A DNA stretch of 50,399 nucleotides from Pelomyxa schiedti (GCA_020536535.1 JAHLWZ010000388.1:1-50399); one strand, 5' to 3'; positions 33,826 through 44,860 are shown, numbered from the stretch's first letter. Numbers and translations are program-made. Notes: generated from the sequence alone by a model not told the origin.

Positions 33826-34932
33826 CTAACCCAACAGCGAAATTTGCATTGGGAAAGCCACTGGAAGGGGCCACCCAACAATTTCCACATTGAACATTGG
33901 ACACCCAGAGTGAACTTCATGCACAGTGATTCCACTGGTTGAAACCAGAAAAACAAAACCAGCCTCAAATTGAACACTCCCACACTGTGACCCCAGTGAC
34001 ACCACTTTCACAAGCTTGGTTGTCCCAGAAGAGCAATCCCAAATATCATAAGAGTTGGTGTGCCCTTCACTGCAAATGCAGAACTGGAAGGCACTCAGCT
34101 GAGACAGTACCACACCCTTGTTGTAGTCTGCCAATCTTCTGGCACTTGAAGTGCCTTCTTCCAACTCAATAAGAAAGAACATGTATCCTTGGAGGACAAC
34201 CATCACAAACAGACGGCTTCCACCTTCTTTCCTTCTCATTATCACGGTTGCCCTCAAGTACCAGGCCACCCCCTCTTGTAATGGCAGCCAAAATGTCGTT
34301 GAGCTCCACAAATCAAGTGAAGCTGCCCCCATTGAGTGCTCCACATCGACAACAATACACACAACAGTTGGCCAGAGTGACAACCTGTCAGCAAGCACAA
34401 TCACCATCTGGTTCGGTTCCACCATGTCAAAGCTCATTCCCTCCATCTCCAGCTGCATCCCACGATAGTTTGGAACCACCAAATCACTGTCTGCTCTCTG
34501 TCCCGGCCTCTTCGTGATACTCAGCAGACCGCATTCCCCAACCAACAAAGCACTCCCACCAGTGACAATCCACGCCGTGTTTGCAGCCACCCACCTTGAC
34601 CTGTACACACCAAGTGGTGGCTCAGTGGCGCTTCCACTCCTCCCCATGGATTCACACACACCAAGTGCAGTGATTCCACACACAGGTGACACACCAAAGG
34701 AAATCCACTCACTGGCCCAACAATGTGGCTTCTTTCCCTTGATCCTCACGGCCATCACCTTCTCGGTCAGGAGCTCAGCAATCGAGTCCCACAATGCACA
34801 CAACAACGCCGGACCCTGCGATCCCAAAACCCTCAACTTCGACGAGGAAGAAGCAGATGCCCGGTTTGAGGTCGAGGACGCGCCAATGAGGAACGTGATC
34901 AACTGCGACCACACGAGGGGGTTGGCATCCAT
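33826..34932 (-). CDS. Orphan-family protein, paralog of 35083-36327, beta-rich (possibly propeller-like)
   Basis: Single-exon ORF, likely starting at MDANPLVWSQL. Shares VWSQLxTxLxG, LRxLxxxGxxL..WDxxAxxLTE and WxSFGVSPxCGIT with its neighbour. Confidence 0.7.
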   Translation of the reverse strand: MDANPLVWSQLITFLIGASSTSNRASASSSSKLRVLGSQGPALLCALWDSIAELLTEKVMAVRIKGKKPHCWASEWISFGVSPVCGITALGVCESMGRSGSATEPPLGVYRSRWVAANTAWIVTGGSALLVGECGLLSITKRPGQRADSDLVVPNYRGMQLEMEGMSFDMVEPNQMVIVLADRLSLWPTVVCIVVDVEHSMGAASLDLWSSTTFWLPLQEGVAWYLRATVIMRRKEGGSRLFVMVVLQGYMFFLIELEEGTSSARRLADYNKGVVLSQLSAFQFCICSEGHTNSYDIWDCSSGTTKLVKVVSLGSQCGSVQFEAGFVFLVSTSGITVHEVHSGCPMFNVEIVGWPLPVAFPMQISLLG

Positions 34933-35082
34933 CAAAAGAGAGGAACGGCTGAAACTGGGGTGATCAAATGTGCGGCACCGCGTAACTCTGACCCCACGCC
35001 CGTTTTCGGGGTTGATGAATTCCCACTTGTGGGTTGCCGCGTTTGACGTCGGTTGGTGATGCATCGGACGAATTTGCTTTTT

Positions 35083-36327
35083 TTATTCGATTTGATCAAA
35101 GGGTTTTTGGCTACTGAAATTTCCACGATCACACAATACTGGGCCATAACAATAGACAGAGGAGACACCAGGGGCTTCAATACTAAGAACGAGCTGACCA
35201 GTGTATACCTCATAAACGCAGACTTGGGCACCCCTTGTGCAAAAAAAAAAGCCAGCCTCCACTGAACATTGCCATGAGGGTGATGGCGAAGGTGGTGAAA
35301 GGGTGGGAGCCGCGTGCAGGTGCATCACTTTGATGATCCTTGTTGTGGGTTGGCTGCACTCCCATATTTCATACTCTGGGTCAAAGTAGTAGTAACTACA
35401 GCAGAACATCCACTCGTTCAGCTGTGCCACGTCATCATACTCTTCTTCTGTTGCCAGTTCCTTTGTTGTGCCTGTGGCTGCATCCATCTCCACATACTTC
35501 GACACGTACCTTACCTTCTCTTCCCTTCTCACAATGACCACCCGGGAGCCTGTCACCCTCCTTCTGAGTGTCAGTGTTGGTTCTGGTGCAATGTTTCCTC
35601 GCGCCTCAAACACATACTTCGAAGTGCTGACAACACTGAGGCACTTGGTACGATAAGAGGCTTTCACATCAATCACAGTGCAAACAGCGCACGTGTCATT
35701 GGCCCACACAATAAGCAACTCATTTGGAGCCACCTTATCAAAAGTGAGGCTTCTCACAAACATCCCACGCCGTGGCTCAGGTGCCACAGTCCTAAAGCCA
35801 ACAACAGCAACGCCATTGTCACCCTCCTGATGCGCACCATCACCACCAACCACCACCACAGGCTCAAACCTGAATTCCACAAGATATTCACCACCCTCCT
35901 CCACAACAGCACTCGCAATGAACCAGCAGGAATTCAGCACGGAATTCAGCACGCTCACAGTGTATGGCTTTCTCACGTGTGTGAGTGGTGGTGGCTGGTA
36001 CTCACTGACACGACTCCTGGTCCTTGTTATTCCACACAGCGGCGACACACCGAACGACACCCACAATGACCAGTTCCCTGCGTCCGCTGTCAAATTAACG
36101 GCGAGCGTTTCCTCAGTGAGCACGGCAGCCACGCAGTCCCACACAACCACAACCAACGACGCCCCGTGCTGCGACAGCAACCTCAGTGCCGACGACGACG
36201 ACGACGACGGTGAGTGAGAAGAACGCGTCGTTGTTGATGTCGATGATGTGGTGGTGGCGGCGGCTCCGATTCCAAGGAGGAGTGTCATGAGCTGGGACCA
36301 CACTTTGGGCCACAACCAGGACACCAT
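35083..36327 (-). CDS. Orphan-family protein, paralog of 33826-34932
   Basis: ORF 35083..36534, likely starting at MVSWLWPKVWSQL (36327). Same shared motifs as above. Confidence 0.7.
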   Translation of the reverse strand: MVSWLWPKVWSQLMTLLLGIGAAATTTSSTSTTTRSSHSPSSSSSSALRLLSQHGASLVVVVWDCVAAVLTEETLAVNLTADAGNWSLWVSFGVSPLCGITRTRSRVSEYQPPPLTHVRKPYTVSVLNSVLNSCWFIASAVVEEGGEYLVEFRFEPVVVVGGDGAHQEGDNGVAVVGFRTVAPEPRRGMFVRSLTFDKVAPNELLIVWANDTCAVCTVIDVKASYRTKCLSVVSTSKYVFEARGNIAPEPTLTLRRRVTGSRVVIVRREEKVRYVSKYVEMDAATGTTKELATEEEYDDVAQLNEWMFCCSYYYFDPEYEIWECSQPTTRIIKVMHLHAAPTLSPPSPSPSWQCSVEAGFFFCTRGAQVCVYEVYTGQLVLSIEAPGVSSVYCYGPVLCDRGNFSSQKPFDQIE

Positions 36328-36674
36328 TCCCGCCCGCGTCGGTTGTGGTGCGACGCCGCCGATTATGGGTTGTCGAGGCTGAGCGTGTCGTCGGGGTACT
36401 GGTGGACTTGTTGTTGACGGTAGTAGAGGTGAGGCAAACCACGGGGGCGCGAAGGGGTATGATGATAGTGTGACGGCGATGGGAGAACCCCGGGGGCCCA
36501 CACGATGCAACATCGAAGAACCACCACCAATCATCTATGATGGAAAATTTCGGATTGGTCTGACAATCTGTAACCAACCACGTTCCGTGCCGATGAGAAG
36601 AAGGGGAGTGAAAGAATGAAGAGGACAGTACTAGATTGTCATCTTCTTTTTGAGGGTAAACCAGAGATTCCTGG

Positions 36675-39171
36675 TCAGAACAGGGAAAAACGGGCACCAA
36701 CGCTCTTTGAGAGCCAAGGGGACTGGGTACCCTTTGACTGTGTTTGCACCATCAGAATGGTGTCGTCAATGATGTCCCCAAATGGTGTTCCTGGACGTGC
36801 CTTCTCTGCAACTGTGTGTTTGGTGAGTGAAGAGAAGGAAGATGGGTGGACACACACCTTCAAGGAAACAGCCAGTGAAGAAACTTCTTGATTCAATGAC
36901 GTGGATGAGTTCCGGGTGTGCAGTGCAGGTTCTCTCTGTGTGGCTAATTCACCACTCACACCCAGACCCGTGGATTTGGTCCTGGGACATCATCCTCATC
37001 AATGACGAAAGAAGATTTTCCAGCAGGCTGCATGGTGATTTACCCAACAAGCCCAGGTTTTTTTCTTGTCCAGTGACGTTTTTTTTTTCATGAGCACACA
37101 GGTGGTGAGGTCAGACTGCTTCTTGATTTCTTCCAGCACAACTCCAAGCATGGGTGCCTTGTACTTCATTACATTAAAGCCAGGTTCGGTGAAAGCGACG
37201 TCATCTGATGTCATCAGGAGGAAGTTGTGCCCTTTGATTTGCCTGCCATGTCCTGCAAAGTAAAAGATGCTTGCAACCTTTTTTGAGTGTCATTGTTGGG
37301 TTGATGTGAATGTGACACCACCACTGACCTTGTTTCTTGCTTTCTTTTGTTCCTTTAAAGTTGCTTTGAACTTTTCCAGGTTACTGGTAAACTCTTCAAT
37401 GTTTGGAATGTTCAAATGGCACGCAACTTCAAAGTTGCATTTGGTCCTCAAGAACTTTTTGAAAGGTAATTTTAAGGGGTTTAATTGTAATAACTGAGAA
37501 AGAAAGATTGTGAAGTCAACAAACCGCGGAAACACATTCTGCATCAGTGATTGTGTTCTTCAGGGAAAACTGCCCACCATATGATTCATTTCCCACAACA
37601 AATGCAAAGCATTTGTAATTCAGCTCAGGACTGAAAAGAGGTGGCAAGCCTGCATTTGTTTTGGATTCAGTGTGGAGGAAAACAGGAAAATGCAATCACC
37701 TGTATTGGTGTCCCTCAATTGCCTTTGCAATTGTGCAACTTGTGACTCCAAGTCTTTGATCTGCATGGAACGACTGAGATTGTTTGTGTTAGTGGTTGGT
37801 TGTTTTGTTTATGTTTATCTTTATATTTATTTGTTTGAGTTGTTTTAACTGAGATGAAACAGAGATTCGGCGCTGCTGCAGTGGCTGCTGGGTTGCCAAG
37901 TGTGATCGAACCTCTTCTGCAATGATTTCCGCATCTCCCACAACGATTCCAAGGCTGCAAAGCTGCTGAACAGTGTAACTGGCCAGTGTTCTTCCCCGGA
38001 GTTTTGCTGATCTGATGACGTTGAGGCAGTCATTGTCCAGCCCATGAGAACCAAGCCACACACACACCTGATCCACGTTGGCTGTTGAAAGGCAAAACAC
38101 TGGTTGTTGTGGTGCTGATGCTTTCCCCTGTGAATTTGCTGTAGATTGGTGGTCATTTGGCGGTGGTTTGGGTGGCAAATTGGTTGGCTTTGGAGTTTCA
38201 ATTTTGGTGGGTGAACGTGTCTGCAAAGAAGAATCTGCACTTAATGGTGGTGTGCCGTTGTCATTTTTGAAAGCCATGGCAATGGTAATGTAGAACGCCT
38301 CAATGATGTCAAGGAACTCATCTCGCACATCTTCGTACTTGTATGTACTGTCTCTCAAATACAATTCCCCATTGTCCAGTGCTGGCAGCCACCCCAGCCC
38401 CAACTCCTCAAAGTTCACCGAGTGGCGCACGATCGGGGCACCTCTGGCCCCAAGCATCTCACTGATCAGGGGCAGGTCGCGATCAGACACCTTTCTGCGT
38501 GTGGGTGTGATGTAGTAGTACACTGGTACATCTCTGGCAAGCAACAAGGCCTCGTCGAGAGTTTGAACGCAGAATGCTACGAACCAAGCAGCAACCCCTT
38601 CACTGGACCTTCCACCAAGGGCGCTCAGCCAACTGAGGCAGCCATCCGGTCTGGCCAGCAATTCAGCTATCTCACAGAACACCTTGAGGGTAACCACTTC
38701 CGTCTCAGCACCAGCCCGTGCATCGACCCCCAAAACGGCGGGAATGGCGGCATTAAATATGGGGGGTGTGTCATCCTCGGACCTGACCTCGGGATGTGTG
38801 ACACCTGGCATCACTAAAATAATGAGCCGTGGTGCCAAGGGTTGACCTGATATTAGATTGTGCCATTCTTCATCTAAACAGTAGCCGTCGTCGGAGGTGG
38901 CAAGGAAGACGAACAAGTCGATTCTGGGCAGTGGGACGATTGGCGACGATGGTGGGCACGGGGAAGGAGAGGAAGGAGGGGACCAAGGCGGCGAGAGGAC
39001 TACGTGCCTGTGGACAGAGGCAAAGCCGCAGGCGCGGAGGAGGATCTCCACCAGGAGGGAGTATGGCGCAATGCGGGGTTGAAACAAAATGCAACAGCTT
39101 TTGGATTGGGCGATGTTTGTTTCCTGGATGTTTGTTCCCTGCGGGGTCACCGTTCCTTGGTTGTTGCCCAT
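36675..39171 (-). CDS. MG-start protein with TIR-like and unknown N-terminal domains, SAM, coiled coil and a caspase-like (peptidase C14, paracaspase-type) domain; disrupted around the catalytic Cys
   Basis: ORF 37789..39171 has MGNNQG and a SAM (VDQVCVWLGSHGL...LRGRTLASYTVQQLCSLGIVVGDAEII). Four in-phase GT-AG introns give KDLESQVAQLQRQL, then CFAFVVGNESY..LKNTITDAECVSA|FLRTKCNFEV...|VASIFYFAGHGRQIKGHNFLL. The C-terminus QTQSKGTQSPWLSKSVGARFSLF* matches the C14 terminal QxPW..S motif. Confidence 0.78.
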
Positions 39172-39645
39172 GTTTTTTGTTTAACTTTGTGATGGCCACC
39201 GAAAAAGGGATTCACCAAATCAACGAAAAGAAAAGAAAGCTGATTCATCCACTTTGGTTCCCGCTTTCTCGCTACAATCGTGTCCACTCCCCGTCAGGGA
39301 CACCGCGGATTATGGGTAGCCGAGGCTGATTGCCTTCTGTTTGATAATTCTTGGTGTTGGGTTTCCAAGTTGGAATCTGGGGTACAGGAAATCAAACAAG
39401 GAAAAACATGAACCATTTTCAAGCAGAAGTCACGGTGTGAAGACCAATTGGAGTACCCAAAAAGGCAGCAAGACCCAAAACTGGTACTCGTTCACCAAAC
39501 ACAGTGGTACACCAACACATGTGACTGCATCTTGAAACAGTAATACGATGTACATTCCTGCCGATGAGAAGAAGGGGAGTGAAAGAATGAAGAGGACAGT
39601 ACTAGATTGTCATCTTCTTTTTGAGGGTAAACCAGAGATTCCTGG

Positions 39646-40593
39646 TCAGAACAGGGAAAAACGGGCACCAACGCTCTTTGAGAGCCAAGGGGACTGGGTA
39701 CCCTTTGACTGTGTTTGCACCATCAGAATGGTGTCGTCAATGATGTCCCCATTGTCCAGTGCTGGCAGCCACCCCAGCCCCAACTCCTCAAAGTTCACTG
39801 AGTGGCGCACGATCGGGGCACCCCTGGCCCCAAGCATCTCGCTGATCAGGGGCAGGTTGCGATCAGACACCTTTCTGCGTGTGGGTGTGATGTAGTAGTA
39901 CACTGGTTCATCTGCAGTTGCACCATCTCTGGCCAGCAACAAGGCCTTGTTGAGAGTGTGAACGCAGAATGCCATGAACCAAGGGACCCCTTTGCAAGGC
40001 CCGGCCACAGGGCATGGGGAAGTAGTCACCAGGCACACTCAGCTGCCTGGGGCAGCCCTCTGGGCTTGGCAGCAGCAATTCAATTCAGCGCCAGCATCAA
40101 CCGCCGAAACGGCGGGCATAAAGGAAGATAATACAGCGTCGAACCTGAGCTCCATCACGGAAGCGCCTGGTGCTACGAAAATAAAGAGGTGGTGTCTCAT
40201 AGTCAACTCGCCCAAATCGTCCGCCCCTAAGGAGTCGTCGTCATTCACGGTGGTGACGCAGATGTGGAAGTCAAAGCTGTCCGCCGAGACCTTCAACGGC
40301 GACGATGGTGGGCATGGGGAAGGGGAGGGAGAGGCAGAGGCAGAGGGAGAGGGAGGAGGGGCACAAGGCAGGGGGAGGACTACGTGCCTGAAAACCGAGG
40401 TAACGCCGCAGGCGCGGAGGAGGAGCTCCACCAGGAGCGAGTACGGGGCAAGTTGGGGTCGGAAAGAGAGGCAGCAGCGGCTGTTGGGCCTGGTGTATGC
40501 CTGAGATGTGTACCGGGCCTCCCGGATCGTGGGTCCTTCGTTGTCGCCCATTTGCTTGGCCGCTCGGGTCGTGGATCCTTGGTTGTTGCCCAT
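39646..40593 (-). pseudogene. Internally deleted paralog of the SAM/caspase-like gene
   Basis: MGNNQG...LAPYSLLVELLLRACG, an in-frame TGA at 40039-40041, then YYYITPTRRKVSDRNLPL...LDNG fused directly to DIIDDTILMVQTQ...RFSLF*. 39559-39751 duplicates 36588-36780. Confidence 0.85.
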
Positions 40594-40776: not shown

Positions 40777-41708
40777 ATGGCAGCAGCGACACTCCCGCCG
40801 GTTTGGTGTCTGCGTTTGTCCCGATTCTTGTATCCAAGTCTCAATTCCACAGCAGTGTGCACCTTCTGAGGCAGAACGCGATGTCATTAAAACACTGACT
40901 GCCACTCATCCAATGAAAGCTGGGGAGATTTGGTTCCTCATCTCATTAAGATGGTTCACTTGCTGGAAAATTTACGTTTCATACTATTGCTCTCCCTCGA
41001 GCTCATCTGGTTGCGGTGCCGTATGTTCTTTGCCCCATATTACAAAAATGATTCATATAATTCATGTTCTTTGAAGGGGTTGTTTGAACACTCTAGTTAG
41101 GCCCCCAGACCAGGACCGATTTCGAACAGTGATCTCCTTGAGGAAGATGGTGAGCTCAAATATTCTGTGTCGGAGATGACACACTATGAGGTGGTCAGCG
41201 GTGTTGTGTGGAATACACTGAAGGGATGGTACTCTGGTGGGCCTGACATCCCTCGTCCTGTGATTTCCTTCCCTGCTCTGTACGGAAATGTTCGTCTCTC
41301 GGTGGAGCTGCAGCCACTGAGACTGCACATTGCCAAATCATCTGATACAACAGCTTCTGTGTTGGCATACTTCAGCAGAATTGACACTGTTGGTCATCTT
41401 AAGGTAGAGACCATTTTCAAGCAGAAGTACAATTATAATTCACTCACACCAGAAAACAATGTGTGAGAGAATGGGATTGGAGCCAGACAACATCCACGTG
41501 TGGGACTACCACAGCGGCATTTGGCTCAAGGAACTTCATGATCAACAAACTCTGCACTCTGAACAGATTCTTCACAACCAAACGGTTATTCTTGATAATA
41601 TGCTTCCAATAATGGACAAAAAGAAGTTTAATGGTTGACTAGGTTATGCTGGATGAAAAAAAAGATGATGGGTTTTGGCCAAGCCGCAGGAGATACTACT
41701 ACCCATAG
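40777..41708 (+). CDS. Stand-alone DUSP + Ubl domain protein, copy 2
   Basis: MAAATLPP|..WFLISLRWFTCWKIY|..PRPGPISNSDLL...WYSGGPDIPRPVI...FSRIDTVGHLK|KTMCERMGLEPDNIHVWDY...|VMLDEKKDDGFWPSRRRYYYP* (TAG at 41706-41708). Confidence 0.8.
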
Positions 41709-44760: not shown

Positions 44761-44860
44761 NNNNNNNNNNNNNNNNNNNNNNNNNNNNNNNNNNNNNNNN
44801 NNNNNNNNNNNNNNNNNNNNNNNNNNNNNNNNNNNNNNNNNNNNNNNNNNNNNNNNNNNN
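44761..44860. other. Scaffold gap (100 N)
   Basis: Run of 100 N between two ROC-COR segments. Confidence 1.

Follow-up and report, generated by a model that had tools for sequence, protein, structure and literature searches.

Caspase-like proteases are usually activated by death-fold or repeat-based platforms. In Pelomyxa schiedti, an amoeba with an anaerobic life (assembly GCA_020536535.1), the gene Pelo_4796 encodes a protein of 662 aa, annotated as 'hypothetical protein' and referred to here as P0001, which combines a SAM domain with part of a caspase-like protease domain of the C14 type. The gene occupies 39171-36675 of JAHLWZ010000388.1:1-50399 (minus strand), and this whole stretch of 50,399 nucleotides (nt) is termed the window. 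The closest described systems are the bacterial C14 (orthocaspase-like) proteins, MALT1 and SARM1.

The protease domain of an intact paralogue of Pelo_4796 (P0004, encoded at the paralogous locus L002) was matched end to end by the bacterial C14 protein P0021 of Thioploca sp. (28% identity over 246 residues, E-value 6e-28), and both proteins have FYFAGHG, DACR and a C-terminal Q-x-PW motif. The bacterial caspase-family proteins are, however, without the SAM domain and the N-terminal module (N-module) of the Pelomyxa family. Among solved structures, the best sequence match to the protease domain was MALT1 (E 0.03-0.13), whose YYAGHG and LDMCRK align to FYFAGHG and LDACRE, a weak match even at its best E-value of 0.03. 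Set against the E-value of the Thioploca protein, the term 'paracaspase-like', given to this protease by an earlier reading made from the DNA alone (the sequence-only reading), is loose. Induced proximity is established for MALT1 and is likely common to the Pelomyxa family, but the latter has no death or Ig domains (no Pfam matches in P0001 or P0004), would employ SAM clustering instead of CARD-BCL10 filaments and, in the window copy, is without the catalytic Cys. In SARM1 (ARM-SAM-TIR), the SAM domain is the oligomerising hub of an effector protein, as proposed here for the Pelomyxa family, and the SARM1 SAM domain was among the weak PDB matches of the family SAM profile (E 0.89). The TIR domain of SARM1 is C-terminal and catalytic, whereas the candidate TIR-like part of the Pelomyxa family is N-terminal with an unconserved Glu, and the effector is the C14 protease.

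Further SAM-C14 proteins are encoded by other P. schiedti genes, in which the SAM-C14 module is preceded by LRR (annotated NLRC3-like), Sel1, MORN or Ank-PARP_reg regions. Their SAM-C14 module is 45-78% identical; these proteins have repeat-type N-termini, in contrast to the orphan N-module of the Pelo_4796 family. In the literature searched, no paper linked P. schiedti with caspases and none described a SAM-caspase protein in Archamoebae.

Domain layout of the Pelo_4796 family

Pelo_4796 probably belongs to a multigene family specific to P. schiedti, with a layout consisting of a predicted myristoylated N-terminus, a fast-evolving subdomain modelled as flavodoxin-like, a conserved orphan core of ~120 residues and, beyond a Pro-rich linker, a SAM domain followed by a C14 domain of bacterial type. 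At least ten genes carry the N-module and share the order N-module-SAM-C14, and most of them begin with MGN. The sequence-only reading had proposed the order myristoylation motif, TIR-like domain, unknown domain, SAM, coiled coil and paracaspase-like protease for the single gene; in the form myristoylation motif, alpha/beta N-domain, unknown conserved domain, SAM, short helix and C14, this order holds for the family. The features of Pelo_4796 upstream of the protease domain are as follows.

39151..39171 (-), N-myristoylation motif MGNNQGT; the PROSITE PS00008 pattern fits at Gly2
38632..39108 (-), N-subdomain, residues 22-180; modelled as an alpha/beta fold of flavodoxin-like type that has a Pro-rich insert
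38254..38619 (-), orphan core domain, residues 185-306; motifs YYxTPT, LPxI, SVNFEELGLGW and FLDIxEAFY
37891..38100 (-), SAM domain, residues about 358-427

The myristoylation motif, also part of the sequence-only reading, is supported by both the PROSITE fit and the conservation of the start in relatives, MGN starts being present in six paralogues, among them P0002, P0003, P0014, P0015 and P0016, and at L002:6213. The last of these positions is where the P0004 locus truly begins, with an in-frame MGNDES followed by a CCxCF N-subdomain; the deposited P0004 protein has its start placed in the wrong frame. In P0009, a strong transmembrane-like helix at residues 399-417 (Kyte-Doolittle 19-residue mean of 2.53) replaces the myristoylated subdomain, which supports a membrane setting.

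Residues 1-320 of P0001 matched no Pfam family. Conservation of the core domain was established from alignments of family members, and the core gave no Pfam match and no usable atlas feature match. An exhaustive search of 1.84 billion protein representatives with the core profile returned P. schiedti proteins only, plus one spurious repeat protein. The unknown domain that the sequence-only reading had placed between the TIR-like part and the SAM domain corresponds to this orphan core of ~120 residues. One result tells against this layout, namely that AlphaFold2 (AF2) gave a poor model of the core, with predicted local distance difference test (pLDDT) values of 30-40.

The SAM domain was consistent across the family at low scores. 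In P0001, residues 364-422 matched Pfam SAM_1 with an E-value of 0.0099 and 16.7 bits against a gathering score of 23, and SAM_2 with an E-value of 0.04. No SAM_1 or SAM_2 match rose above the gathering score, the best paralogue reaching 21.8 bits. Nevertheless, SAM was found at the same position in six paralogues (E 2.6e-4 to 9e-3), seven members in all, and when the family SAM profile was compared with the PDB all 12 of the 12 matches were SAM domains (E 0.018-0.9). The SAM assignment, weak for each protein, was therefore upheld by its recurrence and by the PDB matches being SAM alone. The coiled coil that had been placed after it corresponds to a short heptad-like helix on a 74-nt exon, but this helix has ~20 residues and is present in the closest paralogues only.

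For the protease domain, Pfam Peptidase_C14 (PF00656) matched P0001 with an E-value of 2.6e-14 (53.9 bits, cut-off 21.4) over profile positions 3-88 of 233, which make up the histidine half of the domain, with the His in FYFAGHG (G-H-G motif). The catalytic Cys motif (D-x-C-R/H), ILDACR in paralogues, is not encoded in the Pelo_4796 copy. The C14 protease of the sequence-only reading therefore stands as a family assignment, but in this copy as its His half only. Intact paralogues, for which that reading had suggested looking, do exist: P0004 matched C14 profile positions 3-228 (E 9e-24) and has both FYFAGHG and ILDACRE. In NCBIfam, a 'caspase, EACC1-associated type' model matched below threshold; NCBIfam, PADLOC and a phmmer search of the PDB with the whole protein gave nothing useful beyond C14. 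In a profile search, matches outside Pelomyxa spanned the protease part only. Two members with the myristoylation motif, P0014 and P0015, read LLDSFF at the Cys motif and are natural Cys-less caspase-fold proteins.

Fold and affinity of the N-subdomain

The sequence-only reading had taken the N-terminal segment as TIR-like, with YCLDEEW resembling the WCLDEL motif that bears the catalytic Glu in TIR NADases. The motif was located exactly, at 38883-38863 (-), inside the N-subdomain. AF2 modelling of residues 22-180 from ten sequences gave a pLDDT of 62 and a predicted template modelling score of 0.58, with the order b-a-b-b-a-b-b-a-a, so that the reading stood as regards a modelled flavodoxin-like fold. 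No TIR profile matched in Pfam (E up to 10, nine members) or PADLOC (ten members), and a PDB profile search gave no TIR match. The reading had been made to depend on a TIR or flavodoxin-like fold at the N-terminus together with a Peptidase_C14 hit, and a flavodoxin-like fold was predicted and a C14 match found.

When the pLDDT-62 model was compared with 48,161 chains using VIA-align, the best matches were CbiG (Z 9.5), a ribose-binding-protein lobe (8.7), AerR (8.4) and ketopantoate reductase (8.2). The RPS4/RRS1 TIR chain (4c6t) was at rank 5 with 96 aligned residues and a root mean square deviation of 3.5, its Z of 8.2 being within the range that the tool terms common. Many CheY and flavodoxin folds followed, and B12-binding folds were tied with TIR. 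Foldseek with the same model gave a best E-value of 0.012 to a target that was not TIR. A model of the whole N-region from 7 sequences reached a pLDDT of 43.9, and the Foldseek rows from it were set aside as unusable.

The N-subdomain may be a true but highly divergent TIR domain, making the family a membrane-anchored TIR-X-SAM-caspase, although we consider this unlikely. The modelled strand-helix order agrees with it, as does the Glu placed in the helix following the third strand, and it is favoured by the rank of the RPS4/RRS1 chain, by TIR-STING and 'cryptic TIR' among the weak Foldseek rows, and by a language-model feature search in which the named neighbours were all TIR clusters at 0.84-0.88, scores that are leads only below the 0.9 line. 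Weighing on the other side, besides the missing profile matches, are the tie of this Z of 8.2 with CbiG, B12-binding, CheY and flavodoxin folds, an atlas search by shape that led to flavodoxin and NAD kinase and to no TIR, and a long Pro-rich insert at the expected position of the BB-loop. The ratio of nonsynonymous to synonymous change (omega) between close paralogues was 0.5-0.7 in the N-subdomain, which indicates weak constraint. Finally, the Glu of YCLDEEW is confined to the Pelo_4796 subfamily; elsewhere in the family this position is taken by Ser, Arg or Asp. A conserved NADase site is unlikely; under the TIR reading, the Pelo_4796 copy itself may retain an NAD-cleaving Glu (E101).

The modelled fold class is thus compatible with TIR, which is one of several tied matches and unproven. 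Were the N-subdomain a very divergent TIR, SAM clustering would couple TIR-type with protease-type death or immune outputs, and the family would be a TIR-orphan domain-SAM-caspase family within a wider, undescribed amoebal set of SAM-caspases with swappable sensors; this reading appears rather improbable. A membrane-anchored combination of this kind was not found in the literature searched.

The rearranged protease block of the assembled copy

A single continuous reading frame over 39171-36675 was ruled out, the frame changes being introns. The minus-strand open reading frame from the MGNNQG start at 39171 has 460 codons, the caspase-like pieces downstream lie in other frames, and the stop codon is at 36675. 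With the intact P0004 as template, a homology-guided model was built (exons 39171-37850, 37773-37700, 37649-37525, 37454-37329 and 37277-37103), which has 607 open codons with every intron GT..AG. The joined-exon model served frame checks only, and searches used exon references or database proteins. The contigs of two single-cell RNA runs (X1 and X2) and two DNA runs (X3 and X4) were compared with the window. The parts of the gene are listed below.

37850..39171 (-), exon 1, 440 codons + 2 nt; open frame, 100% match to P0001
37774..37849 (-), intron 1, 76 nt, GT..AG; from P0004 homology (VSSHRSM...) and splice sites
37700..37773 (-), exon 2, 74 nt; short heptad-like helix RSMQIKDLESQVAQLQRQLRDTNT
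37631..37699 (-), intron 2; two possible acceptors, 37650 (homology) and 37631 (RNA)
37525..37649 (-), exon 3, where the C14 domain begins (KCFAFVVGNESYG...); from Pfam C14 and RNA contigs
37455..37524 (-), intron 3, 70 nt; RNA joint 37454/37525 in X1 and X2
37329..37454 (-), exon 4, C14 domain; from RNA contigs and the P0001/P0004 alignment
37278..37328 (-), intron 4, 51 nt, GT..AG
37103..37277 (-), exon 5, catalytic His in FYFAGHG; His codon 37248-37250
36885..37102, rearranged block; inverted coding pieces and two missing pieces
36858..36884 (-), exon piece FFTGCFLE; from RNA contigs and the joint 36811/36858
36812..36857 (-), last intron, 46 nt; RNA joint in X1 and X2
36675..36811 (-), last exon, C-terminus of C14 (...QSPWLSKSVGARFSLF, then stop)

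Between exon 5 and the FFTGCFLE piece, the protease domain is disrupted. The segment NDVDEFRTRGF...YPTSPG is encoded on the plus strand, at 36894-36915 and 36966-37058, with its own GT..AG intron between the two parts. In tblastn, residues 705-735 of P0004 matched the plus strand (frame +1) at 36963-37058 with 81% identity (E 2e-11). In blastn against L002, the window was collinear to 37103 and again from 36882, with 37059-36961 reversed between. Two pieces are missing from the block, one of 34 nt encoding the Cys motif and one of 46 nt encoding ..CKLLSHRNNG. The DNA of the Cys motif was absent from the whole window with up to 3 mismatches allowed. A straight reading past exon 5 meets a stop in its frame near 36997, soon after the His half. 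The intact order was present elsewhere in the data: an opposite-strand joint between 37103 and 36894, with an extra 34 nt and 46 nt, was present in RNA contigs and in some of the DNA contigs, and at a loose end the 30 letters preceding 36894 read ILDACRQADS, the catalytic Cys motif. The intact order with ILDACRQ was thus found in RNA and in other DNA contigs of P. schiedti.

The X4 run was informative for the right junction. The window-type variants at 37034, 37037 and 37049 were present in one unbranched contig (37004-37132) that crosses this junction. The depth of this contig was 33, compared with 31 for the unique N-domain and 46-93 for the intact form. The linkage of the variants to the junction, together with the matching depth, fits a distinct rearranged genomic copy. 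On this evidence the break is likely to be real and the copy rearranged and protease-dead, and Pelo_4796 is most likely a protease-dead or decaying paralogue. Since the copy is without the catalytic Cys, the MALT1-like output ascribed to it is not to be had from the gene as assembled.

Several observations weigh against a real break. Whole-genome-amplified single-cell data carry inverted chimeras, and none of the DNA contigs listed spans the left junction at 36885-36901. Moreover, an unrelated inverted loose end was seen at 39562, where an X3 DNA contig exits the window and runs on in the Pro-rich loop sequence of an N-domain, in inverted orientation; this may reflect another rearrangement or else a chimera from amplification. 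The gene could accordingly be intact in the organism, with the inversion and the two missing pieces being artefacts of amplification and co-assembly, an explanation that we regard as possible, though on balance doubtful. In its favour, the assembly was made with SPAdes by co-assembling single-cell data from seven cells after whole-genome amplification (PMC8887013), and the intact order occurs in the DNA contigs of higher depth and in all RNA contigs; the further inverted end at 39562 and the unspanned left junction also fit. An artefact would, however, require two junctions instead of one, and it does not sit well with window-type variants tied to the right junction in an unbranched X4 contig at the depth of the unique region. 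The adjoining copy B (Pelo_4797) furthermore shows genuine decay at the locus.

Alternatively, the copy might yield a working non-protease product, a truncated protein of N-module and SAM domain, whether or not the His half is included, that acts on intact family members as a decoy or regulator through SAM-SAM binding. This appears quite unlikely. Under the homology-guided model the frame stays open for the first 607 codons, natural Cys-less members of the family exist in P0014 and P0015 (LLDSFF), and use of the RNA-supported acceptor at 37631 would terminate the protein just past the SAM domain and helix. Against these points stand the lack of RNA over the unique 5' half of the copy, the likely removal of such transcripts as faulty, and the weak constraint on the N-subdomain. 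The favoured reading thus remains a protease-dead copy, and the deposited gene model of Pelo_4796, which is patched across a break, serves as a warning.

Gene structure, locus history and proposed working

Pelo_4796 has at least five GT..AG introns, and RNA-contig joints or a loose end were found at four of them. The joints from the two RNA runs were 37700/37630, 37525/37454 and 36858/36811. Exon 1 contains the myristoylation motif, the N-subdomain, the conserved core, a Pro/Ser/Thr-rich linker and the SAM domain. Its donor at 37849 retains EEVRSHL of SAM helix 5, which is conserved in the family. The annotated donor at 37911 (AEE/SFHADQ) truncates the last SAM helix and was judged wrong because every paralogue retains EEV(R/K/Q)SHL; it is also the only path that stays in frame with the RNA-supported acceptor at 37631. 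No RNA contig covered intron 1. The frame of exon 2 agrees with P0004 (RSMLIKDLQAQVETLQQQL) and with a separate contig bearing Pelo_17498 (L001), and an RNA contig lies over 37700-37746.

For intron 2, the acceptor at 37650 preserves the frame and has the support of homology alone, whereas the acceptor at 37631 drives the exon-2 frame into a stop. The joint 37700>37630 was seen in X2, and X1 agrees by a loose end. The 19 nt at 37631-37649 were missing from all X3 and X4 DNA contigs and present in L002; the RNA that uses acceptor 37631 may come from this or from another copy. A candidate intron of 31 nt at 37524 was excluded by the RNA joint 37454/37525. At intron 4, a loose end of X1 at 37284 agrees with the joined form with one mismatch. 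The C-terminal end of the C14 domain, encoded by the last exon, is conserved among paralogues.

Two further features record the history of the locus.

36588..36780 (-), 193-nt repeat matching 39559-39751 at 100% identity; made up of the final 106 nt of the coding sequence and 87 nt of 3' flank
39559..40593 (-), copy B (Pelo_4797); remnant of an MGNNQG N-domain, frameshifted and with part of its interior lost

In copy B, the remnant runs to ...LDNG and then joins the duplicated 3' end of 193 nt via the microhomology TGGGGA. The contig L001 matched the window at 95.6% (L001:428-5471 against 44760-39746). One open frame of 879 codons at L001:4585-7221 encodes two tandem N-modules followed by SAM, and the contig ends in the helix exon; the deposited Pelo_17498 model has a spurious intron that frameshifts the SAM domain. 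Synonymous divergence (dS) between copies (38254-38619 against 39746-39913 and L001) was 0.08-0.16 in the core, in contrast to 0.5-0.6 in the N-subdomain, indicating that gene conversion was confined to the core. The locus is shaped by duplication, deletion, inversion and gene conversion.

The bulk of the window is a Roc-COR-kinase gene array. Directly 3' of Pelo_4796, at 33826-36534 (-), are two long open reading frames of 412 and 483 codons, partly Ser/Thr-rich, for which Pfam gave no match. The 95.6% L001 match also places a DUSP-domain gene at about 40790-41650 on the opposite strand (+), flanked by copy B and the next Roco kinase. The window has two scaffold gaps, runs of 100 N at 679-778 and 44761-44860, and the L001 match begins exactly at the second.

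In the intact members, a lipid (or helix) anchor would hold the protein at the membrane, where the N-module may sense or regulate. The SAM domain would drive self-association of the chains, and this clustering would switch on the C14 domain by induced proximity, by analogy with other clan CD proteases. In the Pelo_4796 copy, the final step of C14 activation would be impossible, and the copy is mainly evidence of rapid turnover of the family. The wider meaning lies in the module itself. A free-living anaerobic amoeba has expanded an arrangement in which SAM stands directly before a bacterial-type caspase domain, and has combined it with many front ends, one of them predicted to be lipid-anchored and unique among 1.84 billion proteins. 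If it is true that SAM clustering activates the protease, this would be a separate induced-proximity route, and the system would be a candidate for immunity or cell death in protists.

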